From assembly GCA_047495785.1 (NCBI GenBank), contig JBLDXI010000028.1, positions 620,001 through 684,000 of the forward strand: 64,000 bases of DNA, written 5' to 3'. Of the stretch, positions 1-45,842 are shown one piece after another. Position 1 is the stretch's first letter. Every line of letters begins with the position of its first letter. The stretch is from Lepidodermella squamata (lineage: Eukaryota > Animalia > Gastrotricha). Below the pieces are notes generated by a model, which saw only the letters and a list, made by a program, of their open reading frames with translations, made no database searches and had not been told where the DNA came from. The translations under genes were made by a program, and so were the position numbers.

Positions 1-3000
1 AATGGAGCCGGGCGACAGCTCCTTATTTATTGGATCTTCTGAATCAGCAAACTTCATCGAATAAAATATTTCGGTTGATTCAGGTACAATAATTTGCTAA
101 TATATTCTACATTTGATTGAAATAAGACTTTATTAGACTTCGAATCTCTTGGGCCTTCTGGTCGGAAACCGAGATTCAGAAGATGATCCTTTCAATTTTG
201 AACCCATGGTATTGTCGAAGCTCCAATCTCAAATCGAAAGCGTCAGCCGATTGACAGATTTATGGCTTCGAATCTTCGGTAATCTCAACTTATCGATATT
301 CCAAGGGTTCAACACCGAATTCCAAGCTGTCGACTACGCTACCAATCAAGCTGAACTCGGAAATGTTACAGTAGTTGCCGTTCTAGCTTTTGACGTGAAC
401 AAGACCACCGGAGCCTTACTTCCTCACATGACTTACAAGATCCGGATGAACTCGACTAACATTCCGTCTGTTCGCCAATTTCGAGACTTTTTCTGGCACT
501 CGCCGAGTTACTTACGAGATTCGATTACTAAAGACTAGTAAGTAAATTAGTGCTTTAAACTGACATTTCTAATATTTATCGATGTCTCTAGTTCCTTATT
601 CGTTTTTATCCAAGACTTGATCGATCGGGCGATAATCGACGTGACTGTCGGTGAAAATGTGGTCGAACCTGGAACCTTCGCTACCAGCTTCCCGTTACCA
701 TGTCGAAACTCAGATAACTTTTTAGACGAGTATCGGTAAGGTCCTGAATCTTTCATTTTTTTTGCCTGAATCCAATTTCAACTAAAATAGGGACCTTTTG
801 CATCTTGACATGCCTCTACGGTTCGCTTTTGCTGCGGCCATTTTGGTGCAAAACGTTATGGACGAAAGAGAAAGTGGAGTTCGCTACCTGCTCATCGCGA
901 TGGGTGTTCAAACCGGAATTCAAAATCTGGCTTGGTTTTTAACGTCATTCTCAATCCAAACTGCAACTGCTACACTTACAACTTCACTCTTCTACCTCAG
1001 CGGCATATTTCCTGCTAGCAATCCACTCGCTATCTGGCTGATCCTCGAACTATTCGCTGTCGCTATTACTGTTTTCGCGCTATTTATAACTGCTTTGCTG
1101 CCAGAGAAGCGATTCGCGTCGTTGCAGTTTACGATTATTTATTTAATCGCGTTTATTCCTGCCGCCACTATTAACCTGTATGAGGCTAGTTCATACTTTC
1201 CATTCCCTGCTTTCGGGAAGCACGTGGCCAGTCTGATACCAACTACACCGTTCGGAATTGCCTTCAAACTTTTTCTTTATCGAGAAGTTGAAGGTGTAGG
1301 CGTTGATTGGGACAACTTCTTGGAATCTCCAATCTCTGGCGATTCTTACTCTTTACTTCATGTCGTGATTTATCTTGCGGTCGATACTGTGATATTCGCT
1401 CTTCTGGCTTGGTGCCTTAACGAAACAAATCCCGGCAAATTTTGCATCGCAAAACCTTGGTACTTTCCGATACTGAAGTCTTATTGGAAGGGTCAGCCTT
1501 GCGATTTCGATAGTCCGGTTCCTAGCTGGGCGTGCAAGCTCAGAATCTCTGGTGAAGCTCTGAATCATGTCGAAGATAACTCAGTCCCTGATCTCACCCT
1601 TGGAGTTGACATTCGCCATCTCTGCAAATCTGGAGAAATCAACGTGAAGAGCTTAACAATGAAGCTACTTGAATCTCAGGTTACCACAATCCTTGGGCCG
1701 AACGATGCTGGCAAAACTACGATTTTGCAAGTTCTGGTCGGTTTGCTGCCACCCTCTTCGGGATCGGTCCGCGTCTATGGAATGGAACTGATGGCTAATT
1801 TGGACTTCATCAGAGATTTCGTCGGCTTTTGCCCGCAACAAACAATCTTGTTCGAAGATTTGACCCCGGAGGAACATTTTGGCCTCTTCAGTGGATTGAA
1901 GCAGACTTCATCTGAGTTCGAGATCGAGAAGATGCTGCGAGAAATAGGTCTGTCAAGCGCTGCGCAGATCACAGTCAGCAAATTGGAGCCTCAGTTACAA
2001 CGAAAGTTATCCGTTGCCCTGGCTTTCATTGGCAAGTCGCGATTTGTGGTTTTAGACGATCCAACCTCTGGTCTGGATGCCTTGAACCAGCGATCTGTTT
2101 GGGATTTCATTGCGAAGCACAAGCCGGGCAGAACTGTTGTGATTTCAACTAACAAACCGAGCGAAGCTGATAATCTATCTGAAAGAATCGCCATCGTCTC
2201 GAATGGTCGCCTGAAAGCTCTGGGCACGTCATCTCAAATCAAAACTTCCTTCTGCGATGGCTATCATTTGGTTCTTACAAAAGGGCTGAGGTGTGGCCAG
2301 CCCTGGGGTTCCATAGTCCATTTCATCCGTGAAACTGTTCCCACGGCGATCGTCGAGTCTGAAGAGGAGACAATGCTGAAGCTAGTTCTTCCATATCCGG
2401 AATGCGATAAGTTTTCTAAGCTGTTCAAGCGACTTGAAGAATCATCTGAAAGCCTTGGAATTCTGACTCACGAATGTTATGATTCGTCCCTTGGCGAGGC
2501 CTTTCATCGCATAACTCGAGACTCCGCTGAAAAGCCCAGTAAAGAAGTTGAACATGGAAGCGAACATGTTACTGAGCCGGATTACAGCTACTGCAAGTTG
2601 TCGCAGTTCGAAAAGGATGGTGATGTTGAAGATCAAACAAGCTTCGTCCAGCAATTTTTGACGATATTTTCGACTCGGTTGACAGGATTCCGGCGTAACT
2701 ACTGGTCATTGACGTGGCAGGTTGCTGTTCCTGTTTTCATCATCTGGGCTGCTTTCTTACTAACCTTTGCAGTTTCTACCGAGGCTTACTTTGAACCTCT
2801 TGCCATGTCGCCAGTTCAGTTTTTTGGTATTATGGAAGGCAGAAGTCTTCATACTCCGATATCTCATCACGATTCCGACAGTGATATCCAACGAGCAATG
2901 CGATCGCTTGAGATATTTGGCCTTGGCACATCTTGCCACCCGGTGAAAGATCCGAACCGATGCGGCTATGGTGAAATGAAATCTGAAGCGATGATTTTAT

Positions 3001-5544
3001 CGAATCTGTCCGATTTACTCTACCCATCGTGTAGTTGCTCGAGTGACAACTCTGGACTAACTTGTCAGAGTGACTACAACCGAGCTGCTAGAAAGCGGTT
3101 GGCAACTGGTGAGTTCCTGGTAGACATCGGCTGGCAGAGCATGTCCGAATACCTGTTGAACACTGCCGGAGAATTTGTCGACAATCGTTATGGAGCGATA
3201 GATTTCGGTTTGGAGCTCAGCCATGTCCCAAATTATTCTTTGAGGCTAGCTGCAAGACGCATTGTCAACTATTACTACGAACCGCGCGGCTATCATTCGA
3301 TGCCAGCCTATTTGAATGTAGTGAATAATGCGATTTTGCGCGCCAATGTTCAAAGGCATGCGCATTTGGGCGATCCTGGTATGTATGGCATAACAACGTT
3401 GAACCAGCCTATTGACGGTACAGACAGCTCAACAATTGGTGACTACGTGTAAGTTTAAAAGCGTAGATCGTAGGCAGATTTTAACTTTCGTAAAAATAGG
3501 CGATGCGTCAGAGATATGCTGATCAGTATGATGGTCCTAACGGCGATGGTTTTGGTCTCCTCGGGCTTTGCGATTGATCTTATTAACGAAAAGATCACTC
3601 TTGCCAAGCACATCAAAGTGAGCCATATAGATGAGCTTAAATTTTAGAGGTTCTAAATTTCCTCAGGTCATGGCTGGGCTGAATTCAACTACCTATTGGC
3701 TGGCGTCTTTCGCGGCAGATTTTCTCATCTTCGCTATACCTGCAACATTGGGAATGGTTGGAGCATCCATCAATTTCCTTAAAACTTTAGTATCAAAATT
3801 TCTCGTTGTCTAGATGGCTTTTGCAGCTTTTGGGAACAGTGTTTATCTACCTTTCGTTGTGTTGCTGTTCCTCCTCTTCGGATGGTCTTCAATTCCAATG
3901 GTCTACGTCCTGAATTGGAAGTTTGCCGATCCCAACAAGGTTAAAACTCCTGATTTGTTTTCCAAATTTGACTTTACTGTTTCACAGGCTTATGTATTCA
4001 CCGTGACATGGAATTTCCTCACTGGCGTTATCGGAATTTTAGTGACATTTCTATTGGATCACCACGGCGCCCCAGAAGTTTCCGAGCATCTCAAGGCGCT
4101 TTTCTTGCTTTTCCCGTCCTACAGCTTGGGCCAGGGTATAATGGACATTTCCGCAGATCATTTCGAAAGATGCTTGTACTCGTCGTCTGAAGGTAATCAT
4201 TATTTTCACAACATTTTTGCATCATGCGGTTATGAAGCAGGTCTGGAACTTGTCCCAACTGCGCTTTGGGAAACTATCGGTCGTAATATGGTAGTTATGT
4301 TCGCCGAGGGTCTTCTCTTCATCGCTTTAACCATGGTCCTCGAGCTTCATTCATTAAGCACGAAATTCAACGAGCCGGAGAATTTCTCAGAATCCTCAAC
4401 TTGTGACGATATCGATGACGCCGAAGTCGAGGCTGAGCGTAAACGGGTTGCTTTATGCGACACCTTTGAAGAGTTGCTTGTAATCGATGGCTTGACTAAA
4501 GACTTCAAAAACTGTCGAGCTGTCAACAATGTCACGTTAGCTCTGCAGTCTGGGCAAGTATTCGGCCTCCTTGGTTTGACTGGATCCGGGAAATCGACTT
4601 TACTGTCTGTTCTCGCTGGAATGAGTGAACCGACAAAGGGAGAAATTCGAGTTACAGGGCGACGCATTGAAGCGATTTCTGGTTCCTCAATCGACCAGAT
4701 TTTCCATCGAATCGGATTCTGCCCGCAGGCCAATCCTCTATCTAGTGAGCTCACTGTTTTCGAGCATCTCAACTCTTTAGCAGAAATCCGCGGCCTATCT
4801 TCTCAAAAGGAAACAATCGAGCGGCTGCTTGTCAGAACTGGTTTAGAAGACTGCGCAGATGTTGTTTGCGCTGATTTGCGAGATGATCTTAAGAGAAAAT
4901 TATCGATCGCCCTAGCTCTTCTTGGAGACCCTGAAATCGTCATTCTAGACGACCCAACTTACGGCATGGATCCTAACTCGCGGAAGATGATCTTGAACTT
5001 GATCGTGGAGCTTCGAAATGAGGGTCGATTGGTGATTCTCGCGACTCGAAGCATGGAAGAATGCGAGGCGGTCTGCGATCGGGTTGGAATCATGGTTGCT
5101 GGCAAGTTACGGTGCCTAGGCTCGATCCCACAGTCCAAGTCGCGTTTTGGCCCTGGCTACACTGTAACCATCCGTTTCCCGTCGTTCAGCAATTCCAAAG
5201 ATTGCGTAGCAGCGGATGATATGAAGAAAGAATTCAGTCGAGCTGGTGTTGATGCTTCTGTCGGACGGTCCTTTGCGACAAGACATGGAGAATGTGTAGT
5301 GCTGGACCTTCTCGAGGCGAGGCCTAGATTCAGCCAGCTTTTCAAACTACTGAGCAACTTGGTCAACTCTGGCAAGGTTGAAACGTACAGTATTTCACAG
5401 AATGGCCTTGAGGCGGTGAGGAAAGGATTGAATCTATGCTTATTTCTTCTATTCATGATCATTTTTCAGATGAATCTCCATTTAGCAGTCACATCTTTGC
5501 CGAGCAGTCAAGACTCGACATGCTCTCAAGTGATTGAACACTGA
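1..5544 (+). CDS. ABCA-subfamily full transporter (5' part outside window; multi-exon), both NBDs degenerate
   Basis: TMD1-NBD1-ECD2-TMD2-NBD2 layout over ORFs 149-538, 798-3452 and 3814-5544. ABCA-type segments (ERESG, PWYFP, GFCPQ, GYHSMPAYLN), Walker A GPNDAGKTT and GLTGSGKST, short GT-AG introns. Confidence 0.92.
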
Positions 5545-26046: not shown

Positions 26047-29000
26047 TCACTTTGCCTGTTGATTTCTCAGCGCCGGAATCATTGACCAAATCGCGAGAGG
26101 GCGCATATAGCCCAACGATCGATATTTATTCAGCGTATTATACGCTTCCGGTGTCTGAAACCCAAGACCCATTCGCTCGTAGATATTCCTATAAATAGCC
26201 TCGGCAATTTCAAACCCCTCTTGCCGCCGGCCGTTCGCTATCAACAGCGACGCGAGGCAGTAATTAACACCCGTCCAAATCTCCTCAGATTGAATGCAAT
26301 CAATATCGACTCCCTTGCCATTTGGCAAGGCGCCGTTCACAACCCCCCACTTGCCGCCATCAACAGCCCTGTAATTGTTGTCCAACACCGAAGTCAGTGT
26401 CAAGTCAACATTTTGCGCCGGAATAATAGCAGACGGGTTTTCCAGTGAATTTGTCACAACTTTCGGATCGTGCACCAAATCACACATGCGTAGATACCAA
26501 TAACCGGCCAACTGATCCGCCATAACCACAGTTCGGTTATACTCCTTTTTGTTACAGTCAAAATTGTAGTATTTCCCGTTCCAAAGTTTGGCCTCGTAGG
26601 CCTGTGACGCTTTGGCGAGTGTTTCCTCGTAAAATTTAGCGTCCTCTGTTAATTTCAGTTCCAGGGCCATGAGTTGGCAGCATCGCAGGGATGCGAGCCA
26701 AAGGCCGCCGCAGTATGCGCTCGGCCCAGTCATCACCCAAACGTCGTAGGTTTGGTCTGATCGCCCACCGTTTTCTATCAAACCGTCCTTATCGGCATCC
26801 CATAGCTCGAGACAGCGTTGGGCAAGCAGTTTGCACAACGGGTAGATGTCTTCGATGATGGCGCGATTTTTGCTGAATACGAAGTCTCTGAAAGGGAGTT
26901 CAATTGGTTTTAAGAAAAGTTTGATTGAAATGTTGATCGGAGCGAAGTTCGCCCTATAATAGGCAGACCGTCATAACAGCACATACCCGAAACAGCAAAC
27001 ACGACAAAACAGAAAAATGTTAAACTAGAGACATAACATCAGAAACACGGTGCATCTTTCTAAGTGTTCGCTGATTTGTCACGAAATGAAAAATTTGCTG
27101 TTTTGTCGCATTCGATGTTCTGCGAAGTTGCTGTTTTGTCGCCCTACAGACCTCTAATACAATGTCTGTGTCATTCGAGAAAATCTGACGTTTTTTCACA
27201 TTCCAAGATTCAAACTACGGAATAATTACCTCCACGTTTGAAGAATGAACTTGAGGTTGAGATCTTTCCACTGTTCGGTCGGATGTACGAAATACGCGTT
27301 GATGTCAGTCCACGGATTCGCATCCGGATCGCCGAGATCGTGCGGCACCGAGTTGCCGACTTTGATAGCACCCACTTCACCCAACATAAACCGCGTCTGC
27401 CGTAAATCTTCCTTCGTTACAGCTCGCGCAAATTCGTACTGAATTGACCTAGAAAAATAAAATTAGGGAATGCGATGAAAAAACCAAAAAATCGAGCTTT
27501 TACAGCTGAATATTTGGCCACAATTGAACCAGAGCGAAAGACGCGTTGTAATGCACATCGTAGGTATTGTACATTTTGTACTCGTGGCCCTCCAAATAGG
27601 CGAACCGGCCGTAATCACGCAGCATCTGCTTATGCGACTCACTTATCGCCTCTGAGTCAATATTTTTCAGATCGACGTCCAACCACACCGTACCACCATC
27701 GGCGATGAAGTACAGCTCGTTGAAAATGGCCGAGCGGAACCACTCGGGCAGCGTCGAGTCGGTGAGGATCGGCAGCTGCCACTCGTCGATCGCCCTCTCC
27801 CACGACTTGTACGCCGACAGGGCGTGGGCGACGAGGGCGTTCGGGTCCTGGTAGAAGCGGGCGTAGCGCCGCTGGTGCGTGTGCCCCGTCGACGCGAAGT
27901 GGATCGTCGGCTGGTGCCACGCCAGCGCGAACACGATCTGCCGCGTCTGCCCGGCCGGCACGCGGTAGCACGACCCGGCCACCGCCGTGCCGATCTCCTC
28001 GCCCTTCGCCGTAGTCGTCTTCGAGCGGTCGTCCAGGGCGGAGGAAAACGCGCCCCGTTCTCGGAATTCGTTCCATAGGTCGGAGCCGTTACCCAACGGG
28101 TTGAACGAGGTCTTGTGAGAGATCAGGACTTTACTGTCGCTATTCGCAGAGCTTTCCAAGGCGCCGAGGCAGTAAGTTGTCGGCATTTTGCGTAAATCTT
28201 GCTGAATCTTCGCGACACGAATCGAGCTTTTCCCATCTTCAGTTTTCACCTACAAAATCACAGTAAAATATTCAAGCCTTCAAAAATGTATACTTTATGT
28301 TTCGATCGGATGAATCGGAAATAAATTCGTCGGGGATCAGATTTATTTCAGAAACAAAGTCGGATTGATGAGCTGATCGGCTTTGACTCGCAAGAAGACC
28401 ACCTACAACTAAGAGAGGACGTCTGCGAGTGGCTTCGTAGAGCCTTGTCTTATTGGCCTCATATCGAAGAAAAGCAAAATAACTTGCAACTTGCAAAATA
28501 AGTAAACATAAGGGTGCACAGCACACAGGCGCCGGCCACGATGATCTGGGCCGAAAGCTAACTCTGAACGTTCTGCTCTAGGCAATAATAATTATATTGG
28601 ACCTTGGGAGTCAAAAACGTCGCTTACTCATTTCATTCTCTCTGCGAACTTCACTAAGACGCTAATCTTTTTCGGTTTTACCTGCGCATTATAACTAAAA
28701 ATAAAACCCCATCATTTCGACTGATATCTTAACAGTCATTTTAACAATAAACGCGCTAAAAATGACAAACAAGCTCATTTCAAAACGTCTTCTCATTCAA
28801 AACCCCATCACTCGCGCATTTTCGTTACACGCGAAATGATCGTTCCCATACATTTTCGAAAAACAATCTTTTAGTAGAAACAACCGAAAATTCTGGGCAT
28901 TTTTTGCAATTCTGCGACTTATTTTGAAAATTACTAAAACAAAAGAATTTTCTGAAAAAAGATACCGTAAATTGGGGTGAAATTACCATATCAAAAATCG

Positions 29001-30093
29001 AAGGTGGGTAATGATGTATTGATGTGCGTTGTAGATATCTAGACTGGTCTCTTCTCGGGCTATCCAACGGTCTTGCCCTAACTTCGATTTTTGATGTACA
29101 TGGTCAGCCTAATTTACGGTAGGTCCCTCTTTTCGTGTATTTTCTTAGCTAGCGTTACGTATGGGACACGTCGTAGCTCAGTAATAAGCCTTGCCTCCTT
29201 CCGAGGGGATAAGCGCATAAATCCACATTGTCCAGCAATTTTAAATCGACGATTGAAATTCAGAGAATTTTTCAAAATTCAAAGTGAAAGAATTCAGCAA
29301 GATAAGATTAACATACCTGAGAAGCTTCGGTGAAACAGCCTCCATTCCGATCGAAAGCCGCTTCACCAACGCCGTTTTTGAACGCAAAAGCCAACGAAAT
29401 ATCCAAGTCCTCATTCGACGTATTCTTCACATCCCAAACGAACACGGCGCATGGCAAACACGACTCGGTGTAATCGCCCGGGATGAACGGCGAAATCTGG
29501 CGGCAAGTCGCTTCGACGCCACACTGCGACTTCAAATCGTAGCTCGTCCACGATTTCGGGTACAACGCTCGATAGGACACCGATTTTCGGTCGGACAACT
29601 TCTTCCAAGTCGTTAGATACGGCGATTTCTTGTCAGGAATTTGCGGCCCACCCGCGACAAGTAGGGCTTCCTGCCAGATTTTTTCCGGCTTCTGATCGGA
29701 ATTTTCGGGCGATTTCGCGACGCGAAGGATGAACTGATCAGCGTCAACTGTGTTGTAGGTATAGTGCCCTGGGATCATTTGGAATCGCGTGAAAGCGCCG
29801 CCTATCGACCGGCCGATTGTGCCAGAGCCGATTCCGCCCAACGGAGCGCCGTACATTGGCGCGTATTGAACGAGGTGAGCGTGGTCCATTGGTATGCTTT
29901 CGCCGCTCCATCGCTTTTTGGCGTAGTACCAGGCGATGTGGGGCATGTACCATAGAATTTCCCACATCTGGTTGAGGCGGGGCGTTTGAAGCGGGCTCAC
30001 TGGTTGCGGGAAGACATGGTCGAGTTTGACGCTCCAGCCCAGGGTGTTCACATCGACTTCACCATTGGAAGACTTTTTCTCATCGGAAGACAT
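26047..30093 (-). CDS. GBA2: Non-lysosomal glucosylceramidase (GH116), copy A
   Basis: [84 protein letters not shown]. Confidence 0.95.
26960..27150. repeat. Small foldback repeat in GBA2-A intron
   Basis: cgacaaaacag(c/a)a-type motifs on the left, inverted ttgctgttttgtcg twice on the right. Confidence 0.5.
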
Positions 30094-31735: not shown

Positions 31736-34700
31736 TCAATTATCGGATGCCAGATTTTGCTTCGCGTGGTTGAGCGCCGGGATCATTGACCAAATCGCAA
31801 GCGGCCGCATGTAGCCGAGAGATCGAAATTTGAACTGCAGATTGTACGCCTCGGGCGTTTGGAAGCCGATGCCCATCGACTCGTAAACGGTCCGATACAC
31901 CGATTGCGCCACGGCCAGGCCATCGCTACGCCGGCCATTCGCGATCAAAAGCGCGGCTAGGCAGTAGTTGACTCCGACCCAGATTTCTTCGGATTGGATG
32001 CTGAACTTCTCCACGCCTCGATGATTCGGCCTCGCGCCATTCACCACGCCCCATTGGCCGCCGGAGATCGCGCGAAAATTGTTCTCGACAATCGACGTTA
32101 AGGTGGACTTCACGTGATCTGGAGGCAGAATCTCCGAGTCTAATTCGCCGTCTTCGTCCTGAACTAGATCGCACATTCGAAGGAACCAGTACCCGGCGAG
32201 CTGATCAGCCATGACCGTGGTTCGAATCGTTTCGCTTCGATTGCAGTCGAAGTTGTAGTACTGACCGTTCCACAGGCGGCTTTCGTACGCGTCAGATGCG
32301 CGATTTCGGACATTTCGGTAGAATTCGGCGTCTTCTTGCAGGCCCAGCTCGACGGCCATGAGTTCGCTGGAGCGTAACGCGCCGAGCCAAAGACCGCCGC
32401 AGTACGCGCTCGGGCCAGTCATCACCCAGTTGTCGTAGGTCTGGTCAGGGGCGCCGCCGTTTTCGATGAGGCCATCGCCGTCTTTGTCCCAAAGGGCCAA
32501 GCAGCGTTTGACGAGGGCCGCGCAAACTGGATAGATATCCTCGATTACACTGCGATTTTTCGTGTACACGAAATCTCTGAAAATTTAACGGAAAATTGTT
32601 TTACATTAATTTATACCAATTTTCCATGTAATAAAAAAATGAATTTCTTAGATTTTAGAAAAGTCTATAAAAATATATTCCTTACGAATTATTTTGAAAA
32701 ATAAAAAAAATTCAAAAATAGAACCAAAATTTTAGAAATTTACTCGGTCGATTTTCATTTTTAAATTTATAATTGAAAGCCCGAAAGAGATATTAAAGCA
32801 CTTGCGGAAATTAGAATAAAAATGCAATTCTAATGCTTACCGCCATGTTTGAAGGATGAACTTGAGGTTGAGATCTTTCCACTGATCGGTCGGATGCACG
32901 AAATACGCGTTGATTTGCAGCCAAGGATCCGAGTCAGGATCACCGAGATCGTGCGGAACACAGCCAGGAACTTTCAACACGCCGGTCCCGCCAGCAAGGA
33001 AAACGGCTGGCCGTGTGTCGGACAAAGTAGTCCACCTCGCGAATTCATACTGAATCAAGCTAATAACAAGAAAATGATGGTTATATTGTTTTATATAAAT
33101 TTCAAAAAATTCAATTTTTGTTTCAAAATAAACAAGCCAGTTCCCATCTGATTTTTCGGATTTTTTAATAAATTTTAATCTGGTGAAATCTATGATGAAT
33201 ACTGCTAGCTTCTCCCCGAAGGTTCAATTTGAAAAAAATTGATAAGAAACCAGAAAATAGCGATGGAAATTATAGGACACTGACGACGAGTTCCTAAATT
33301 CCAAACTTTTCTTGAATTTCCATGATTATGAGGATCTAATTTTTTAATGAGAAATGAGAATATGGCAGGATCAATTTGTTATAACCTGTAGATAGAGATT
33401 GCGTGCTCATTTCGCGGAATAGGACCCCAGACATTTTGGATTAAAAATTGAATTTTTAGGGAAAAAAAATAAAATATTTAAAGATAAATTGAATAAACTC
33501 ACAGTTCGATATTCGGCCAAAGTTGAACTAGAGCGAAAGACGCATTGAAGTGCACATCATACGTCGTGTACATGCGGTATTCATGGCCCTCCAAATACGC
33601 AAATCGGCCGTACTCGGCCAGCAAATCACGATGCGCCGGACTGATAGCCTCAGCCTCGATATCCTTCCGATCAATATCGACCCAAATCGTACCACCATCG
33701 GCGATGAAGTACAGCTCGTTGAAAATGGCGGAGCGGAACCACTCGGGCAGCGTCGAGTCGGTGAGGATCGGCAGCTGCCACTCGTCGATCGCCCTCTCCC
33801 ACGACTTGTACGCCGACAGGGCGTGGGCGACGAGGGCGTTCGGGTCCTGGTAGAAGCGGGCGTAGCGCCGCTGGTGCGTGTGCCCCGTCGACGCGAAGTG
33901 GATCGTCGGCTGGTGCCACGCCAGCGCGAACACGATCTGCCGCGTCTGCCCGGCCGGCACGCGGTAGCACGACCCGGCCACGGCCGTGCCGATCTCTTCG
34001 CCCTTCGCCGTTGTCGTCTTCGAGCGGTCGTCGAGGGCGGACGAAAACGCGCCCCGTTCGCGGAATTCGTTCCATAGGTCGGAGCCGTCTCCCAACGGGT
34101 TGAAGGTTAGCTTGTGGGAGGTCGAAATTTTGCTGCAGCTCTGGTCGTCCGAGCTGTCGAGAACGCCGAGGCAGTAAGTTGTCGCCATCTGCTTGAGTTC
34201 TTGGTAGATTTTCGAGCACCGAATCGATTTTGAGCCGTCTTCAGTTTTTAGCTAAAAATTATAATAACAGTCATGATGAAAATATTCATTTTTAGCGCAA
34301 TTTTCTAGATGGACTCACTTGACTGTCACAAAAGCAACAAACTGAGGTCTTAAGCACCCTTAAAATTATAAATCATTTTACTGTTTTTGTTTCTGTTGTT
34401 TAATGTACGCCCCCACAACTTGCCAGCGCGCCCATCGTCAAACCTGCTGTTTCGGGAGGTACCTCGCCCGGTAAGAGCGGATCTTTTCAACTTTTTTAAC
34501 ATGTTGAACATTTTTTGTTTGAAAATGTGTCACAGCCACTCCGTTCCATGCGAAGTACGGCCGCAGCCATTGTTGTTGCCTGCTGCGCATTCATCCTGGG
34601 TTTGATCACATTCTACTCGTTTTTATTGTCACCGTTGGCCCGGGGTGATAGCAGGCGGTGTTGCTCGCCGTCATTTACCTGTTACTGTTGGTTTAGACAG

Positions 34701-37700
34701 CGCTGTCCATTTTCAGCCATCTGCACACCCGGAACCGGGCACTCAACACAACTATAGCCTTAATAATTCTGAACACAACAGCCGCCCTCAACTCTAGGTT
34801 ATCGACGCAGTCATGCAGCCAGTCTTAGTCAACTACCAGCTACATCACTAGCTTTTAATATTATATTGGCTCATGTATAGATGCTTTATTACATCACCTT
34901 AAGATCAAACAAATATTCTTGATTTCACATGGTGATTTCTCCGTATTATTCACTGCAGCACCCGGGAGTACTCGTGTTTCTCCAAAATTGTACATGCTAT
35001 AAATATACTCTAAAATTTACATTTTTGGGTGCTTGGGTGCTGGACCGCGGTTTAAACCCAATCCGAATGTCTAAAAGGCAACGTTACAGTAACTACTTAT
35101 CTGTAACTCGGATCTCCGATAAATCCGTTTCTCCTTAGACGAGCAGCTCATTTCTGAGAATGACCTGATATCGATCAGGATGGGCATTCAAGCGATATCT
35201 CACCTGCCCGACTGTCCACAGAGATCGGCGGACATTCATTCTCAAATGTTGGTGGAATACTCATTTTTCCTTAAACTTGCACGTACCACTTTTGAAATTA
35301 ATTTTTTCATGTGATTTTATGAATTATCGCCCTGAATGAAATTACTATAATCACAGGCAAACGACGTCGAGCAAATATTGTTCATATCGCGCCAAAACTC
35401 AATTTTACTCCTTAACGCTTTATAACATTTATCATGTCTTTTTTGAAGAATCTTCGATACTCATTTTTCTTATACTTACTGTACATACTGTATTTTATAA
35501 AACACTCGGTACTGAAAAATTCTGACTCGTCTTTCGATGCAGCTTTTGGTATTCCATTCATACATATTTTAACCGCAAAAAAATAATCTTTATATAATCA
35601 CTGTGTCGCAAGTCCACATTTTTAATAAATGTTTATCTCTCTTTGTCTATTTTTATCAATAGCAATTTGTCTAGATACCTCACTATCATATAAAAAGTTA
35701 TATTTAAATTTCTCTGACTTCATTTTCGCACGCGATTGTAAAATTGTAAAATGTCTTCTTCTACGCTTTCTTCCTCACTGTAAAAAATCTCTGGCTATAT
35801 AGCAGTTGGTATTTAGCCACTTTGGGTATTTACTGTTTCACAATTTCGAATAAAACAGGATAATTTGCCGAAAATTATTTAACTTCAAAAAATCTCTAAT
35901 TAGTGTGTCATATTTTTCATTCGTGATAATTACTGGATGAAAAATGCGCATTTGAAATGAGAAGGGCGATTGTGATTTTTTTGTCTTAAGAGAGAGCAAA
36001 ACATGTTGCGCAACACAGCTGGCTCGCTGATTTTCAATAATGATGGATGAAAAGAAATAAAAACATTCAACGAACAGAGATCGATTTTTCGAAGTTTGCT
36101 GAGTGCCATAATGTCATATAAATCATGTCTATGTTTAATGCAGTTACTTTTTGTTGCGGATATACTTATTATTTTGTTGATATGGTTATTAGAATGGATA
36201 GGGAAAAACGTTTCCCGGCCTTATTCAAGGATGAAAATGTCGAAGATTCAGTCAAATCTGAAATTTTCGAAATTATGGAGAGTTAGTTTTGAATTATTTC
36301 TTAGAGTTCTTATCGTTTTTGAAATTTTAGACATCTCAGCCGCTTTTATTTACTGATTTTCACTCAAATTTTATTTTAAGCGATGTACATTGTTTGATTT
36401 ATTTCGGATTGATTTTTTGTGAAATTTCAGATTTTCCATTTTTGGCTTTTAAATTTGAATTTTTAAATTACCTTTTTAGCGGAATTGTTATCATCACACT
36501 TTTAGCGGTTGAAATTAAATTTTACACATTTTACAGTGCCAAATGCCTTTTTAGGGAATTTTCCTGTCTCGTTGTTAACCCTTAAATGCCGAATACTGTC
36601 TTTATTAACGCAGGCTCGACTGTTTTTGTTACAATTTCTTCGGTTTTTCATGAAATTTTTTCTTCAAAGAAATGCTCTGATTTTTAGTTGAATTTTTTTC
36701 AATAAAATAAAAAATTGCAAAATATTGTATACAATTTTTTAGTGAGATAAATATTGAAAAATTTCTAAAAATATTGTCATATTTGACTGTCGCTTTGTAG
36801 GATGTCGCCTGACGGTTACTGAGCTGCCGGATTTGGACGACCTCGTGTTAGAAAAGGTGTTCCCAATAATCGGGCTTCGAACAATCGTTAAGCGAATTTT
36901 AAGGCAAAAGCCTGCAGAAGCTTCTAAGGTTATACGTAGCACTATTTTTCCTTTCTCGGAATTTAACCAATTTTCAACAGAATACCGGCAAAAATCGGCA
37001 CGAACCACTGGTTATGAACTTCACCCAAGTTCACTGGGATCATCCCACTCTCAGGGCTGAGTGGAAGGAGAAGCGCATATGTGCGTCCTTCAACCAGCTG
37101 GTTCGCGAATATGGCCTGGCTCTGCTGAAGCAGAATGTTGGACGCGATTGGAAGCGCGGCGATAGCACGATAGCGACTGAGGTACTAACCAACCGCTTTA
37201 CGTGGCTTTTCAGTGTCGACGAGACAATCGTGAGTTATTTCAATTTATGATTTGTAAATTCAGCCAAAAATTTATTTGATTCTTTGAAATACTGAATTAA
37301 AATCAACTAGATACGCAGGGTGTCCAAAACGTAGGGCATAAATATATTTATATTATATATATATATTAATGATCAATAATAATTTTTAAATATTAATAAT
37401 CGGGCGCGCTCGGTGATGAATAAATAGTGACGATAGTGCGGTGAAACTATCCTCGAATATTTCTGATATTTCGGGTTTTATTTCTTTCACCAAGTACTAC
37501 GTCGTATCCGCAAAATTCCTTCTGATAGTTTGACCGGCTATATTTTATAATACAGAAGGCGAAAAAAATCTGAAAAATTGCCAACAAGAAATGCATCGGG
37601 CCATCGTTTCATCCGCGAATTTTTCCTGATGCTTGACTGTATTTGTAACTTGCATTATTTGTAACTACTTTTTAGACACGCCGTATTAGCTGAATTAAAC

Positions 37701-40700
37701 TTGAACGGCCTTAGGGAGAAAGATTTTCCTTACTTTCGTCTTTCGTCAATAATCTCAAAGGGTTAAAATCTCCGGCGAATTTTCGGCGCGCTGCTTTTCT
37801 GGGAATGTTAAGGGAACCAAATAGACGGATTTGCTCTTCGAAAAAGTTGTTTTTTGTTTCGTTAATCGTGATTAATTTTCCTGGGTTTCTGATTTCTCCA
37901 AAATGTCTATTATTTTCAAAGTTGTTCTTGGAAATGCTTAAGAAATATAAATTCCTCAAATTGCAATGTTTTTCCAAACAGACCCAGTTCAGAAAGCAAC
38001 TGCGCGAGTTTCTGAAAAATTACAAAAAGGAAGATACTGAAAACCTTAAAATGAAGGTCCGGCGCCGGAAACGTCGAACGAAAGAAGAGATGAAGTCATC
38101 GGCAGGGAACAAAGGTAATTAACCTTTACTTGTGAATGAAAATGCTAAAAAATCAATTTAGACGTCGAACATGATTCACCGCCTTCAAAGGCGCAATCGA
38201 TTTCGAAACCTAATACTACGAATGTCGAAAATCGTTCGAAAGACAGTTCTGGGTTCAGTTTTGCTGGTGGAAGTCCTTACGAGATTACATCCGATTCTTC
38301 TCATTCATCCTTGTCGCACGAAGACGCTGGACTCGAATCTGCCAATTTACAAGACTCCCAGGCATCGAAGGTACGATCACAGACAGCGACGAGTTCGAAA
38401 TCGCCAAGTCCTGCCTCATTCATGGCCGACGCTTCGCCTGATAGATCGCCATCGCCGACAACTGGCCATGCTTCGCCCTGCCTGGCACGTCAGCCGAAAT
38501 CGAAAGTAAATCTCGCTCGCAAAAATACGGAATCGAAACGACAGACTACACCGTCGTCTAACTCAAGGTCGCCCTCCCCGTCGTCTCCTAATCGCTCAAG
38601 GTCGGAATCGCCAGTTATTTCATCGCCTCCCGCCTTTCCAGCAAACCGTAACTCGCAAAATGAACGAATTTCTATTCCTCTTCGAATTCCCATCCGTACC
38701 GCAGCGGTGTCATCGACCCCAAGATCTTGCTCGCCACCTTCAAAAGATTTCCCATCGCCTATCTCTTCGAAAAGCTTATACGCGCACGCCAGGTTGGTTT
38801 CTGCCGAATATTTTCGTTCATCGAGTAGTTGTGAATCGTCGCCGCCTGTCCCATCGAGAGAAAATCGGCGAAATGAAACGTCAACGCCATCGTCATTGCC
38901 GACTGGGGGGGACGAGACTCGTCAAAGTCTACAGATGGATGAGTCGCCTAAGTCAAACCAAGAATCTTTCTTGACTCACTTGGATTCACCGACAGCAGCA
39001 GGCTCAGTGGCAAGTAACCAAGGCTGCCCTAGGCATGAGAACTCGTCACTCGTATCACCAGCTGAGACTGAATCAGTAACCTTCTCAAGTCAACGAGTAT
39101 CTTTTCCGTAAGTTGACAATGGTCTACATTCAATCCCATAAAATGATTGGCTTCGTTTTAGCGAACGGAAACAACCAGCTGCAGAAAACGCAGCGCCATT
39201 GGTCACTCAGTCCTCTGAAAATCTATCGAAGTCCCCGCTAGTGCTCGAAACGCAGTCGGAGCAACCTCATCAAACCGTCGCAACGTCTGAAGGCCTACCG
39301 GACTCCTGCCTCTCTACTGCAAACCCTGCTTCTTCCAGGAAAGCTCAGAAAGTCACGCCTTAGTAAGTTCAACATCCTTGAGGTCAATAAAAATTTGAGC
39401 AGTAAAGAGAGCTTTATTCTTCATTTTTTTGAATTCCGCATTCGCCCATTTACTAAAGACTAATTTTTCCAACAAAACCTCATCAGTGAGCGATTTTGCT
39501 TTTTTTCCGACGAATAAATACTATTATGAATACTTGCGGTTCTGTTAATTTGCGTTCTTTAATAGCGAGCGCCGGCTGGATGCGGTGCCAACCGACGAAC
39601 AAATCGCGAAATATTTTTCGATACCGCCACATCGGTTCACAGTCAAGCCGGTCGCGGGTGATGGCAATTGCCTGTTGAGGGTCGTTTCTGATCAAGCGGA
39701 TGGCACTCCAGAAAACTGGGCAAAATACCGCAACATGGCCGCTGAATATTGGAAGCGCAAAAAGGGCGACCTGGCTGCTTTTCGGCAAGGACTTTTTCCC
39801 GAAAATGATCTCGATCAGGTTTCAGAAGAAGCTGCCGACTGGAGCGTCGACGATTACCGTAAGCATTGACTATTCCTTTTAATGTTAATAGATGGAGTAT
39901 TTACTGTTATAGTTAAAAAAATGGAAAAACCAGGGTTTTTTGCCGGAAATGAGGTTTTGGCTGCCATAGCATCAGAAATGAACGTGGTTATCAACGTGCA
40001 TCAGTTGGACAAACCGTTAACGGTGATTAGGCGGGAAGATGAGAACGCACCGCTTCCGGCAAAAGAATTCAACATCTTCTTTAACGGGCTCAATCATTAC
40101 TCAAGCTTGCGCCCTAAACGTGGGCGTAAGCCGCGCACCTCGGCAGTAGAAGAAGCTCCTTGAATTACTACGCCGATATTCGATATTCGAGGGTGGCGAG
40201 AAGGAACTTTTGTAAATATTTATTATTCATGACTTTTCAAAAAATCAGACCCTATATGTCTTAACGATTTCTTATAATTTGGCGACTCCTTTAGAATCTT
40301 TGCATGGCGCCTACATAAGTCTCTTATCTCCTATGCGACCAGTTGCTTAATAGCTTAGCCAAATTGGCTATACGAAGTAAGTGTACTATTACACACTTAA
40401 AAACTAACTAACAACTTTGCAATCTATTTGACAGCGCTTTGAATATTTCAATTCCGCTTTCAACTTGCTTTCATTCGAGCTCTCGAATAAACTTGGCATT
40501 ATCAATATTTTTAGATGGCTCCTTTTAAATCGGGACAGGTTTTGAGAACCGTGTACTGCAAATTTTGCGCTTATCGATTTTTAAACAATACCAGGCGCAA
40601 GAAACATCAAGAAGTTTGCCCAAATAGACCTTTTCAGGACTACGCAAATGATCCGACCATCGCAACGACAACTGATGATCTTCCTGTGATGGGAGATCTG

Positions 40701-43700
40701 CAGGAGCCGCGAGGCGAAACCGATGTCGAGCCTGAGTTCGCGAAGATTCACGATGATGTTAGTTTACGTGTTTACTTAGCTTGCCTAGTTATCTGCTGAT
40801 TTTCAGGTCTATGGTTTTGTGCGTCGATTAAAATGCGAATTTGTTCTTACCGAGGCAGCGATCGAATTCATTGTCCAATTCATGATGACTTCTTTTAGTC
40901 AACTTCTGGCTATGATCAACTCTACTAGTGCCCACTGTCGTCTGTCTACCATTTTCAGGGGTCTTGGTTCGAGTTACCATCGATCGCTAACTTTCTCCGT
41001 TAGTTTACAAACAGACGACGCTATGATTTACTAGTAAACCATTTAATTACAGGGCGAATTCAGATGCACACTCGAAGCCGCTGGGTCTTTCAATTATTTA
41101 CCGATAATACCTCAAGTATCGAAAATTTTCACCAAGTGTCCGGATTTCGCCTTGGCGCATGAGAAATCTGCGTTACTATCTTACGGTTTTGGCGAAGCGA
41201 TTACGTCGCCTCTAAACGGAGCTGTCGTGCAGGAATTCATCAGGGAAATCCAAGCTGATCTAATTGTGCCTCTTTTTGTTTTCTTCGATGAAGCTAACCC
41301 AGCGAGCTCGATGAGTGCAAAAGGAAAAGGCCAGGAGTTGGCTCTGTTCAGTTGGTCTTTTGTATCACAACCCGAACGCAAAACAAAGTTTGTGATTTTG
41401 ATGACCTCGAAATTATCTGTAAAATTATTTTTTTAATTTTTTAAGCATAATAACGGAATCAGACAACGTTCTGATGCTCGCCCTGGGAAAATCGGCGAGT
41501 TTGAAGGAGAAAAACGTGCCAGAAGCCGTAACTAAAAGTAAGTCAAAACTTCATGGTTCTATTCCTCAAATCTATCAGTTTTATAGATTTGTCTTTCGTC
41601 CTTGAAAAAGTCGAAGCCGAACTTGAAAATTCGTTTCGGATTACCATTTGCGACCGCGAGTATCTCGTATTTGTGGCAGTAATTGCACTCGTTGCTGACG
41701 CATTAGCTGGCCACCAAATAGGCGGATTCACGACCGCATTCGCCAAGGCGAAGTCGATCTGTCATCGGTGTATTATCACGAGAGAAGAGCTGATTACAAT
41801 ATTCGATGCATCCTGCGCCCTGCGATCTGTGGAATCCATCAACATCGATAAGTCAAAAGTCGCCATGGCGTCCTTACATGAAAAATCTAAATTGTAAGCC
41901 AACCTGAGATGAGAAATCTCCTTATTTTTATCTTGATTTTTCAGGAGAAGTTCAACTGGTGTTAACGGTGAGATATCCGGTGCTTCGCGGATGAAACACG
42001 TCAAGTATCCTGGCGGCATTCTTGCTGATCAACTTCATGACTTCGATGAAGGGTTTCTACACTCAGCTTTCGGTGAACTCCTATCCTATGCAATCTCAAA
42101 ACATGGTCTCAATATCGAAAATTTCGCCTTGGCTGTCAAGCAACACTGCTACGACCCGCTGGAAAAGCACGAATGTGTTCCGACGAACATTTTTAGCTAT
42201 GCTTCGAACATGGTATCTACGCGTCAATCGGGTACCGGGATGAGGATTCTTTGCACTCGGCTACCCTTCATTTTAAGTGGTCATTCTATGCTCCAAGACT
42301 CGAACCGATTCTTTTCCAGCACTCAATGGTTCGCTTTCATCGACATTCTCAAGGCGAGAGCAGCTATTCTCACACCTGTGTCGTTCAGATGTGACACGCC
42401 CCGCTTGGCTTCTACCATTCAAAAAATGCTACAAAATTACGTAGTTGCCTTTGAGAAAAAGAAAATTGAAGTTAAGCCGCATCGACTGACCCATTACCCG
42501 AAACAGCAAATCGATTACGGCCTTTTGAGGTGAGTATTCTAACATCAATTCTGTCAACAATAATAATCATTCTTCATAGGGCGCATGCGTCGTGGAAGTA
42601 CGAAAGAAAAATCGGCCTGTTAAAAAAGTCAATTCATGGGTTCAAAGACTCCGTTGCTGAGTCAATGTCGTTCTTCTGCACTCAGGCAGATCGGTTCATT
42701 GAACTGTTCAACTCAGCACCGAACTATCAGGTCAAGTCAAAACTAGTTTCCGAGTTGAAACTCGAATCGCCGATCGCCTGTCTGGGGGAGACAGTGGACC
42801 TGTTGTCACCGCTACGATATCGAGGGACGTTTCTTGCGCCTGGCTTGGCTATTCTACAAAATATGCCATTCATGTCGTGGTTCGATGACAACTATCTTCC
42901 CCGATTCTACATTATCCGGCACCTTATATTATTAAATAACCAAGTTTTTGCCATTGCTTCTAATTCTACCACAACCCACTTTAGCAGACGATACATTTCT
43001 TTTGAAATTGAAATTGACAGCTCACATTTATCTCTTATCAAACTAGAAGACTTGAAATTCCGAAGATCTTTTTCTGTCAAATATGTGAGAAAATCTGCTT
43101 TCGTAATTGTTGATTCTTTTCCCATTATATGAGAATAACTGAGAACTTGGAGATGTTCAAGTAAAGCAAAACGTTCTGTTTCCCCGTGTTTTTTTGGAAA
43201 GCAGAGCCGGAACGAGGGGGAGGGGGCTGGGTGGCGGAATATTGTGGCTACTTAGCACGGGTTAAATATCTGAGGATAAATATCTGGTGTAAATAGCTGT
43301 TCGTTGGATAAATAGTAGCGGCTGTTTAGTTTTTCTAACGATCAGATAAATACCAACTTGATAAATAACCATGATAGATATCTCGTCTGAATATATGATT
43401 AACCCATTCCTTGTTATTTACCAAAAATAAATTCACTTGGGTAAATAGTACGCGTAAATTAATTTGAAGGGCTAAATAGGAGGTTCTATGGGGGGTTTTT
43501 ATCCAAACAATTAAAGCAATTCGAATGGCTAATTAGCGGCTATATAGCCAGAGATTTTTTACAGTGCTGAAAAAATCGTAAATCAATGGTTATTTCCCGA
43601 ATCTTCAGTCAAAGCTTTAAATCTCTTCACATCTGTGCTTGCTCAATGGCCTTTTCGTTTTATTCATATCCAGCAATAAACACTATTTTGATACAACAAG

Positions 43701-45842
43701 ACCCCGCCATTTTTTGTGTTCAAGCTGATTGAAAAATTGATCAACTCAAACTGCCAATAAATCGGCTTTTCTCTAAACATCAATAATGTAATTTTACTTC
43801 CTGAGATCTCTCTTTATCTATCTCTGTCGAATTTGATACCTTGCTAATGATAGCTAAAATATCATTAATTGATAAAAAAAATTATCAATGAATTTCTCGA
43901 AATTGTCAATTAATCCAATAACCTGGGCATACCTAAATATTACTGCATGAATAAATAGACATATTAAATAATCTCTGCCTTTTCGCTTAAAAGCGAACTT
44001 CCGCCCTCAACTTATTTCGAGTTATTAAATCCAGAAAAATTTGAAATTTTTGGCATTTATAGTCCACTGCTTGGATCTTTTAGGAAATCTACTCGCTTAA
44101 TTATTCCAGAATAATTCAAATCTCCAGCTCTAGCAACTACTCATTCTACATCTTTCATCGTTTCAAAAATATAAATTCAAAATAAAATTAATAGGCGGGA
44201 TTTTTTAATTGAAAATATCAAGAATAGTAATAAATATAAATGTCCGCTCTTCAAGACTAGCGACTTACCATGCAAGCATCAGTGTAGCAGCCGCCCTTTC
44301 GATCGAATTTCGACTCGCCAACGCCGTTTTTAAACGTGAAAGCCAGCGAAATGTCTAAGTCTTCATTCGACGTATTCTTCAAGTCCCAAACAAACACCGC
44401 ACACGGCAGGCACGACTCCTTGTAATCCCCCGGGATGATCGGCGTGATTTGCCGACACACCGCCTCGACGCCGCAATGACCGGATAGGTCGTAGGTGGTC
44501 CACGATCGCGGGTAAATTGCGCGATACGTGACAGATTCGCGGTGGTTGAACCGCTTCCATTCGGGTAGAACTGATGGTTTTTTCTTTGACACCTGCCCAG
44601 CGACTAGGAGGGCCTGTTGCCAGGCGTGAGGGTTCTGCGGCTGAGCGGCAGCACGAGCCGATGGCACAACTCGGAGAATAAACTGATCAGCCTGAAAATA
44701 TTTAAAAAATATATGTTGATGATGAATAGTAGCGCGAAAGGGGCCTTTATTTAGGTAATTGTTAATTAAAGCATAATTTAGGATTAATTAGAAAATTAGA
44801 AAAATTTGACGGAAAATTAAAAAATTAGAATAATTTAAGCAAAAATTATAAAATTATCTGCAGCTAGAAACTAAGAATATTGAAGTATGTTTTTGCGGCA
44901 GGCCCCTTTTTCATACGGTGTGTCATTAGCTGGATACAAAAAACCAGTACTTATTTGAGCACGAATATACGGGCCAATAACAATATTTGCTATAGTATAA
45001 ATCCCCTTTCTTTGTGCTCGGTTGAGTAGTCATCAAACAATACGCGCTAAATAAAGGTACAGGCGTCCGGAACGAGACCAGAAAACCAAACTTATTTATA
45101 GGTCAAATCCTATAATTTTTATATGAATGTCCAATGAAGGTCAGAATTTAGCCACGAACCGGCAGTTTTTTGTACATTTTACGCACGAATTGAGCCTAAT
45201 TTTAGCACGAATTAAACAAATTTAGCATAATTGATCGAGAGTTTTTATTATTAATATAGAAATTAGTTATTTTCAAGTAATTTAAAAATCTATACTTACT
45301 TCGACTGGCTTGTAAGAATAGTGGCCGGGAATCATCTGAAACCTGCAGAAAGCACCACCATACGCCCGGCCGATAGTCCCCGATCCGATACCACCGATTG
45401 GGGCGCCGTAAATCGGCCGATACGGCACAAGATTGGCCTGATCCATGGGCACGCGTTGATTGGCAAGGCGCTTCTTGATCCAAAATTTGGCGAAATTCGG
45501 CACTTGACCCAGCAGTGGCAACACCTGTTTGAGCCGCGGCAGGTACAACGGCGTTCCAGGGCGCGGGAATGAATGGTCGAGTTTGACGGACCATCCTAGC
45601 TGGGAGACGGTCAAATTTTGGAGGTCCTGCTGTGATGGGGGGCGTTTCATTGACGGCATTCGTTGCGGGCGAGCAACGACTGATTTCTGGTTATCATCAA
45701 CAACAACTTGAGGTAGCTTTTCATCGGCTGGCGGGTCTTCCGAGTCTGTGCTGTCTGGAATTTGTTCGTTATTCGACTCGGAAAATTCGCGAAGAGTCAC
45801 TTCTGACGGCAGAAGGACTTCAACTTCAGAAAATGAAGACAT
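31736..45842 (-). CDS. GBA2: Non-lysosomal glucosylceramidase (GH116), copy B, with a ~10-kb intron (~34253-44266)
   Basis: Same conserved motifs as copy A across exons at ~45300-45842, 44267-44691, 33503-34252, 32841-33058 and 31736-32576. Confidence 0.93.
34548..34757 (+). CDS. Putative secreted six-cysteine peptide nested antisense in GBA2-B intron
   Basis: [69 protein letters not shown]: hydrophobic leader, dibasic site, CC-C-C-C-C. Confidence 0.5.
   Translation: MRSTAAAIVVACCAFILGLITFYSFLLSPLARGDSRRCCSPSFTCYCWFRQRCPFSAICTPGTGHSTQL
36194..40163 (+). CDS. Transposon accessory protein: SAM-like N-terminus, basic NLS, Ser/Pro-rich linker, C-terminal OTU cysteine protease (8 exons, ~760 aa)
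   Basis: All exons splice in frame by GT-AG. OTU Cys box [15 protein letters not shown], central [11 protein letters not shown], His box [10 protein letters not shown]; NLS-like KVRRRKRR. The SAM-like call is tentative. Confidence 0.85.
40515..43132 (+). CDS. EnSpm/CMC-type transposase (7 exons)
   Basis: N-terminal CxxC-x12-H-x3-C finger; FVFFDEANP; [17 protein letters not shown]; DQLHDFDEG; [13 protein letters not shown]; WKYERK. No stops or frameshifts after splicing. Confidence 0.88.

Follow-up and report, generated by a model that had tools for sequence, protein, structure and literature searches.

Why would a cut-and-paste DNA transposon carry a ubiquitin protease? The question is raised by a 7.8-kb element, intact-looking and CACTA/RAG1-like, at positions 35776-43566 of a 64-kb window of contig JBLDXI010000028.1 from the gastrotrich Lepidodermella squamata (the window is the whole stretch of DNA analysed here, and all coordinates below refer to it). 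Between the ends of the element lie two co-oriented genes, a transposase gene and, upstream of it, an accessory gene whose predicted product ends in an OTU domain. A sequence-only reading of the window had proposed a two-component system of a transposase and a nuclear deubiquitinase that counters silencing, which was pure conjecture as far as function goes. Our analysis indicates that the OTU domain is genuine, as judged from its sequence, and that the accessory protein begins with a decayed remnant of ribosomal protein S29. We consider the chances about even that the gene encodes a maintained nuclear deubiquitinase which serves the element.

Structure of the element and its ends

The features that delimit the element are as follows.

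35774-35775, no strand: left copy of a putative 2-bp target-site duplication, CT, directly outside the end
35776-35803, plus strand: 5' terminal inverted repeat, 28 bp, perfect complement of 43539-43566
35804-35900, plus strand: 5' subterminal region, with TATTTAB at 35810 and 35827 and a copy of the repeat core at 35887
43270-43490, minus strand: 3' subterminal region, with seven TATTTAB in inverted orientation
43539-43566, minus strand: 3' terminal inverted repeat, perfect complement of 35776-35803
43567-43568, no strand: right copy of the putative CT duplication, directly outside the end

The terminal inverted repeats (TIRs), CACTGTAAAAAATCTCTGGCTATATAGC, start with CACTG and are complementary at 28 of 28 positions, just as had been described from the letters. 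Searched at up to three mismatches, this sequence had just these two matches in the window, against a chance expectation of 0. The TIR core AAAAAATCTCT occurred in one extra direct copy. The motif TATTTA[C/G/T] (TATTTAB) was found at two positions in the 60 bp next to the left end and at seven, inverted, in the roughly 290 bp next to the right end, giving nine occurrences in the two subterminal regions vs a window background of 0.48 per kb per strand.

The flanks of this single insertion read CT/CACTG...CAGTG/CT. The CT proposed earlier as a target-site duplication (TSD) is thus present on both sides; however, a 2-bp identity arises by chance in 1 of 16 cases, so that taken alone it is weak evidence for a duplication. 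A TSD of 3 bp or 5 bp does not agree with the flank letters. We also noticed that the 14 nt outside each end (35762-35775 and 43567-43580) are mutually complementary at 10 of 14 positions, which could be a palindromic target preference or a coincidence.

Both genes inside the ends are fully open and spliced at GT-AG sites, with about 4.4-4.7 kb of uninterrupted coding sequence. Together, these features show what is, as far as its letters tell, a structurally complete DNA transposon that looks autonomous. The earlier suggestion that the perfect ends reflect recent activity is reasonable but weak; the open coding sequence is the better argument, for either youth or selection.

The accessory gene and its OTU domain

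The accessory gene comprises the following features, all on the plus strand.

37014-40163, plus strand: accessory gene, six-exon core model, 679 aa, stop codon TGA, all junctions GT-AG, single open frame
37014-37229, 37982-38114, 38162-39107, 39162-39362, 39566-39858, 39913-40163, plus strand: exons of the core model
36125-36281 and 36801-36928, plus strand: two optional upstream exons of an eight-exon model, hypothetical, compatible in frame and GT-AG sites
37014-37136, plus strand: S29/uS14-derived N-terminus, residues 1-41, about 32% identity, 3 of 4 zinc cysteines lost
38060-38077, plus strand: basic cluster RRRKRR, candidate nuclear localisation signal, by sequence
38162-39362, plus strand: Ser/Pro-rich low-complexity linker in two exons, approximately residues 222-604 of the eight-exon model
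39633-40109, plus strand: OTU domain, split by a 54-nt intron (39859-39912), both halves similar to OTUD3
39657-39671, plus strand: Cys loop GDGNC, with the codon of Cys534 (six-exon numbering) at 39669-39671
40092-40106, plus strand: His motif NHYSS, with the codon of His658 (six-exon numbering) at 40095-40097
40116-40136, plus strand: basic C-terminal tail KRGRKPR, AT-hook-like by sequence, not canonical

The first half of the OTU domain matched residues 18-68 of human OTUD3 (PDB 4bou; E 1.4e-5) and the second half matched residues 78-139 (E 7.1e-6). Since the two matches are colinear across the 54-nt intron, they confirm this junction. The Atlas (language-model) neighbours of both halves were OTU clusters, the GDGNC loop aligned with GDGNC of OTUD3, and NHYSS aligned with EHYDS. 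By sequence, then, the OTU domain at the end of the co-oriented gene is genuine, as the earlier reading had it. Its catalytic Cys-His dyad appears intact, and the third position of the triad is atypical. Of the complete catalytic set claimed before, Cys (in GDGNC) and His (in NHYSS) were therefore present, whereas the third position is occupied by Ser and not by Asp.

The exons from 37982 to 40163 (4-8 of the eight-exon model proposed before) share a single frame once GT-AG introns of 47, 54, 203 and 54 nt are removed. A model of eight exons and 785 aa starting at 36125 can also be built; for its first two exons we found frame and splice-site compatibility, and no similarity in Pfam or PDB. 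We considered an F-box in the second exon and dropped it, as neither collection supported it. Because the similarity to S29 begins exactly at the Met of ATG 37014, we regard the six-exon model as at least as likely as the longer one, so that exons 4-8 of the earlier model stand and its two most upstream exons stay hypothetical. The intron at 37230-37981 is 752 nt long and far exceeds the others (47-203 nt). Within it lie an AT-rich palindrome (37345-37378) and short sequences common to contigs of sequencing runs X2 (labelled 'RNA?') and X3 (another organism of the same study), and it may hold a nested small repeat.

Between the N-terminus and the OTU domain, the basic cluster and the long Ser/Pro linker were found where the earlier reading had placed them, the cluster being a candidate import signal to judge by its residues. 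Serine makes up 21% and proline 10% of a 390-aa window (residues 171-560 of the eight-exon model) that overlaps the linker exons without coinciding with them. This Ser/Pro-rich part, about half of the protein, had no Pfam match.

A decayed S29 fragment and the origin of the accessory gene

Residues 2-41 of the accessory protein aligned with residues 2-42 of S29, from Met1 onwards, in S29 proteins of many species (phmmer, E 0.003-0.01). The Smith-Waterman score of this alignment was 68, compared with 19.2 +/- 3.6 and a maximum of 48 for 20,000 shuffles; of the 2,044 translated window segments compared, none of the others scored above 41. The Pfam family Ribosomal_S14 did not match this N-terminus, and 1 of the 4 zinc-binding cysteines is kept. 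The sequence is thus that of an old, decayed S29 coding fragment and not of a functional S29. With this N-terminus, the accessory gene is a chimera, in all likelihood built from captured host sequences. We also noticed a pyrimidine run, tttttcctttctc (approximately 36945-36958), 55 nt upstream of ATG 37014, which recalls the terminal oligopyrimidine (TOP) start site of ribosomal protein genes; a promoter may have been captured along with the fragment.

The S29 origin was missed by the earlier reading, and it strengthens an explanation other than the one we favour, namely that the accessory gene is a passenger: fragments of S29 and of an OTUD3-like gene with low-complexity filler, without a role in transposition and open only through youth. 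The S29-derived N-terminus proves that fragments were captured, and it shows that the element picks up gene pieces, of which some may be mere passengers. Plant CACTA and Mutator elements are known to sweep up pieces of host genes. On the other hand, the captured parts have diverged widely from their donor families, with about 32% identity for S29 and about 33% for OTU (range 32-34%), even though S29 is among the most conserved eukaryotic proteins. As identity to the donors has fallen to about one third while some 680 codons and the splice sites are uninterrupted, the frame appears to have been kept since capture. Such change without a stop or frameshift in 679-785 codons, and with canonical splice sites, is hard to obtain without selection. 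This argument fails, however, if the pieces had already decayed at capture or if the copy is very young. We therefore take the passenger explanation seriously, as a possible but rather less probable account, and return to it below.

The transposase and its family

The transposase gene and the signals around its start are as follows.

40486-40491, plus strand: AATAAA, 24 nt ahead of a TTTTTAG, which adjoins the transposase start codon
40515-43132, plus strand: transposase gene, seven exons, 768 aa, spliced model without a stop
40515-40757, 40807-40998, 41053-41387, 41446-41537, 41587-41893, 41945-42529, 42580-43132, plus strand: transposase exons
41287-42604, plus strand: catalytic signature, consisting of D224 (41287-41289), D325 (41697-41699), C346-x2-C349 (41760-41771), H569-x3-H573 (42480-42494) and E593 (42602-42604)

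The uninterrupted seven-exon transposase of the earlier reading was reproduced in full: 768 codons without a stop, joined through six GT-AG introns of 49-58 nt, with the exon 3 donor AAA/GTTTGT (41387/41388) as the sole weak site. Over residues 29-767 the spliced protein was colinear with three intronless open reading frames (ORFs), P0008, P0002 and P0023, at 24-27% identity (E 1e-46 to 1e-53), which supports the exon model independently; these full-length relatives are uninterrupted ORFs from metagenome or assembly contigs. The family is sparsely sampled, as a HMMER search with exon 6 found 22 relatives among 1.84 billion cluster representatives, the best being 36% identical, and identities of the transposase in the databases were 24-36% at most. 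A word-indexed protein search with P0008 gave one further relative only, and a scan of JGI metagenomes with exon 6 gave none. Taken singly, the exons matched no Pfam family (including Transposase_21 and DUF4218); a profile of the family had no real match among PDB sequences, and a PHROGs search gave nothing useful.

In an alignment with six relatives, the most conserved columns include D224 (FFDEA), D325 (LVADAL), C346-x2-C349 and E593 (KYERK), and H569-x3-H573 belongs to a similarly conserved block just upstream of E593. The order D, D, C(2)C, H(3-4)H, E is the signature of EnSpm, Mirage, Chapaev, Transib, Plavaka and RAG1 (PMC12730594). Pfam DUF4218 was recognised in one relative, P0004, at 35.8 bits (cut-off 27), and weakly in four others. 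This region accompanies plant CACTA transposases. The Atlas neighbours of exon 5 were Plavaka, Transposase_21 and RAG1 clusters.

For the fold we relied on an AlphaFold model of the relative P0008 (25% identical, E 1e-53; pLDDT 74.9, pTM 0.76) and not on the element's own spliced transposase. The 48 best PDB matches of this model were all RAG1, amphioxus RAG-like or Helicoverpa Transib structures (best E 4.9e-10). Its neighbours in AlphaFold DB were mostly unnamed, with two DUF4218 proteins and one 'Transposase domain-containing' protein among them. The neighbour at rank 8, A0A6J8C0I8, is named 'HECT domain-containing', and its residues 3-592 align with the transposase fold; it may be another link of the transposase family to the ubiquitin system, or a fused gene model.

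We place the transposase in the CMCT clade (EnSpm/CACTA, Mirage, Chapaev and Transib kin), on the CACTA side rather than that of Transib. The EnSpm/CMC identity proposed earlier is thereby supported at the level of the CMC clade by the CACTG ends, the D-D-E/CxxC/Hx3H signature, DUF4218 in relatives and the RAG1/Transib fold of P0008. The termini CACTG...CAGTG agree with the CMC/CMCT pattern 5'-CA(C)...(G)TG-3', and short TSDs of 2-5 bp are typical of the clade (PMC12730594). Membership in Transib itself was rejected, as its 5-bp TSD does not fit and the relatives contain DUF4218. A 2-bp flank would fit Mirage as classified in Repbase.

One of the metagenome contigs, L005, contains at 97-5517 a 5.4-kb element with CACTAGTG...CACTAGTG ends and the 760-aa intronless P0008. 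A 2-bp TT flank can be read at its ends. None of its three small upstream ORFs (197, 87 and 119 aa) resembles the OTU gene; the L005 element may be a full relative that carries another second gene.

Insertion site and evidence for other copies

A minus-strand GBA2-like gene surrounds the element, which lies antisense to it in the wide gap that separates two exon blocks (one block ends at 34261, the next starts at 44262). This gene is the second of two tandem GBA2-like paralogues on the minus strand (26300-30051 and 32004-45608). In the neighbouring paralogue the same gap measures about 1 kb (28259 to 29310) and is thus about 9 kb shorter. Most simply read, the insertion is intronic and younger than the GBA2-like duplication.

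In sequencing run X1, probably the source of the assembly, the element stretch was evenly covered (word depth 38-44). Breaks in the X1 assembly graph, about 40 bp inward of the 5' end and about 100 bp inward of the 3' end, hint at other elements with the same termini elsewhere in the genome. The graph also forks over the HDFDEG motif (42036-42073), at 36 nt that are common to another contig, with a depth of 60 vs 38. This fork hints at one or more paralogous transposases at other genomic sites that contain the identical short stretch. In run X3 the element was not found.

These observations bear on the possibility that the locus is a fossil or composite unable to move, its host-like gene lying between two ends by accident and its CT flank being coincidental. 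Such a view could cite the single copy seen, the 1/16 chance of the flank match, and the 10/14 complementarity beyond the ends, which makes the true boundaries questionable. It would have to account for inverted ends at 28/28 with zero chance expectation, subterminal repeats oriented with these ends, an open 768-codon transposase with all catalytic residues, graph breaks near both ends of the kind expected if the termini are common to other elements, and the far shorter homologous intron of the paralogue. We consider it very improbable.

Possible expression of the two genes and proposed role of the accessory protein

In the explanation that we favour, the accessory gene would have been assembled in the present transposon lineage from captured host sequences, related transposases being without OTU. 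Its parts follow in the order S29 N-terminus, basic cluster, Ser/Pro linker and OTUD3-like OTU, and they would have diverged while the gene was kept open, with about 680 codons uninterrupted. The product would be an element-encoded nuclear deubiquitinase that helps transposition; it would either prevent ubiquitin-dependent turnover of the transposase or alter ubiquitin signalling where excision leaves double-strand breaks. Transposase protection or break-signalling roles have been proposed for proteases (OTU, Ulp1 and VTD) in elements of the Ginger1, Mutator/CACTA and Helitron kinds (PMC2836005, PMC11417382, PMC9741609).

Both genes may be expressed as one unit, because the transposase ATG follows a 3' splice-site-like sequence located 24 nt after the AATAAA of the upstream gene. 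The direct junction TTTTTAG/ATG (in 40486-40517), to judge by its letters, suggests cis-splicing from upstream exons or trans-splicing in an operon-like pair. We also noticed a weak in-frame donor, GCA/GTAGAA (40145/40146), which could even fuse the accessory protein and the transposase. The plant element En/Spm makes its TnpA and TnpD by cis-splicing from upstream exons. In a bolder version of our explanation, the S29-OTU protein would be a long-maintained, TnpA-like second component, sharing a transcription unit with the transposase through alternative or trans-splicing and required for efficient mobility; this we regard as unlikely.

Several results weigh against a maintained, element-serving deubiquitinase. 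First, the domain itself departs from expectation. Ser660, two residues after His658, stands where OTUD3 has Asp and where Asp or Asn is expected. A hidden Markov model (HMM) search for OTU, which the earlier reading had suggested as a check, gave a weak match: when Pfam was run on the separate exons or halves of the domain, and not on the spliced domain, OTU (PF02338) reached E 0.017 and 16.1 bits on the first half alone (cut-off 23.3) and had no match on the second half alone. Second, the searches turned up no other instance of this pairing. Nine contigs with related transposases (L001-L009, 2.5-6.8 kb; transposase identity 24-27%) had no OTU similarity at E values up to 10, which suggests that OTU was acquired in the present lineage and is not a feature of the family. 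Word-indexed protein searches with each OTU half gave no match, the JGI metagenome scan with the first half found no relatives, and an exact look-up of two ORFs of the element returned no record; no close relative of either gene was seen in the protein and metagenome collections searched. No further copy or fragment of the element was detected in the window at the DNA or protein level, so that a single copy is known from the window and the databases searched. Third, run X2, which consists of low-depth, near-identical fragments including introns, contained no splice joints, and one X2 contig retains intron 4. Finally, nuclear import, deubiquitination and help to transposition are all steps that we infer.

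Some of these results speak for a passenger gene in particular: the related transposases without OTU, the half of the protein that is low-complexity Ser/Pro without a family match, the Ser at the third triad position and the X2 run without a splice joint. In addition, a young copy would show perfect TIRs and open frames with or without selection. Apart from the divergence discussed above, two points argue against it: the catalytic Cys and His are kept, and ubiquitin or SUMO proteases are found again and again in superfamilies of transposons that are unrelated, a pattern that favours an advantage to the element.

If the protein does serve the element as a nuclear deubiquitinase, its substrate could also be chromatin. 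The OTU domain would then strip ubiquitin from histones, or other silencing-linked ubiquitin, and keep the chromatin of the element active, which is one of the functions that the sequence-only reading had put forward. The basic cluster fits nuclear import, the AT-hook-like tail fits contact with DNA or chromatin, and enzymes that modify chromatin or DNA are known from other CMCT-related elements, for example the TET/JBP genes of fungal CMCT relatives (PMC12730594). However, no sequence feature indicates a histone substrate, and the closest solved relative, OTUD3, is reported to prefer K6 and K11 chains (PMC9741609), not monoubiquitinated histones. We consider this anti-silencing role improbable.

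Comparison with known transposons

Among known systems, plant EnSpm/CACTA elements share with the present one the CACTG/CACTA termini, subterminal repeats, a short TSD (here an apparent one), the D-D-E triad with CxxC and HxxxH, a DUF4218-type region (here in the relatives), and a second co-oriented gene, located next to the transposase or upstream of it. They differ in a TSD of 3 bp vs the apparent 2 bp found here; the present host carries animal-type genes, and none of the transposase exons is recognised by a Pfam CACTA model. Some plant CACTA elements carry Ulp1 genes. These Ulp1 (Peptidase C48) elements likewise have an accessory cysteine protease of a ubiquitin-like modifier system, which is directed at SUMO, whereas OTU is directed at ubiquitin. 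Ulp1 genes are also found in plant Mutator elements (PMC2836005).

Mirage of C. elegans and Chapaev are animal CMC elements and share the 5'-CAC...GTG-3' ends. Mirage is listed with 2-bp TSDs in the Repbase classification. We know of no OTU gene in either of them, and no report of one was found in the literature searched. The TSD of Chapaev is 3-4 bp (PMC4079192).

Ginger1 elements of Hydra, Aplysia and aphid are also animal cut-and-paste transposons that encode a Pfam-type OTU domain, with a proposed link of the ubiquitin pathway to transposition or repair (PMC2836005). In Ginger1, however, the DDE domain is Gypsy-integrase-like and OTU or Ulp1 is fused to its C-terminus, whereas here a RAG1-like transposase is preceded by a separate OTU gene. 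OTU domains also occur in Helitron/Helentron proteins (PMC11417382, PMC6431247), which have acquired deubiquitinase modules by repeated independent capture, and the VTD domains of Helitrons cleave K48, K63 and K11 chains (PMC11417382, PMC9741609). Those are rolling-circle elements with the domains inside the RepHel polyprotein. None of the transposon OTU domains has been assayed to date (PMC9741609). In fungal DNA transposons, OTU and C48 proteases serve as markers of accessory domains (PMC5751038).

Human OTUD3 (4bou) is the best solved relative of both OTU halves at about 33% identity, with the GDGNCL loop and the HY-S motif aligned. The two differ in the Asp that follows His by two residues (Ser here) and in their flanks, as the S29 remnant, the candidate nuclear localisation signal and the Ser/Pro linker are unrelated to those of OTUD3. 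With RAG1 and Transib the transposase shares the fold (of the modelled relative P0008) and the position of CxxC and HxxxH between the second Asp and the Glu. In RAG1, H942 and E962 are 20 residues apart, which equals the spacing from the last His to Glu in the element. Transib differs in its 5-bp TSDs, while the relatives of the present element carry the CACTA-associated DUF4218.

In the full-text literature searched, no OTU turned up in a CMC/EnSpm element, in keeping with the earlier statement that no characterised OTU cargo is known in animal EnSpm elements; the search covered papers and not the Repbase and Dfam collections. The pairing of OTU with a CMC transposon is thus unreported in the literature searched, yet it fits the known habit of transposons of acquiring such proteases.

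Significance

Ubiquitin and SUMO proteases recur across unrelated transposon superfamilies, which poses the question why the elements keep them. The element described here, a RAG1-like transposon with two genes, is compact and apparently intact, and its accessory gene is separate and could be cleanly deleted. Its chimeric origin, from S29 and an OTUD3-like gene, provides a built-in clock for the time of retention. Were this copy the sole one, it would be a case of ordinary gene capture. With further copies, the claim could be put to a direct test, by comparing them and by assaying transposition with and without the accessory gene. Should the S29-OTU protein prove to be a TnpA-like second component, this would be the first CMC-type element to build its own deubiquitinase from host parts.

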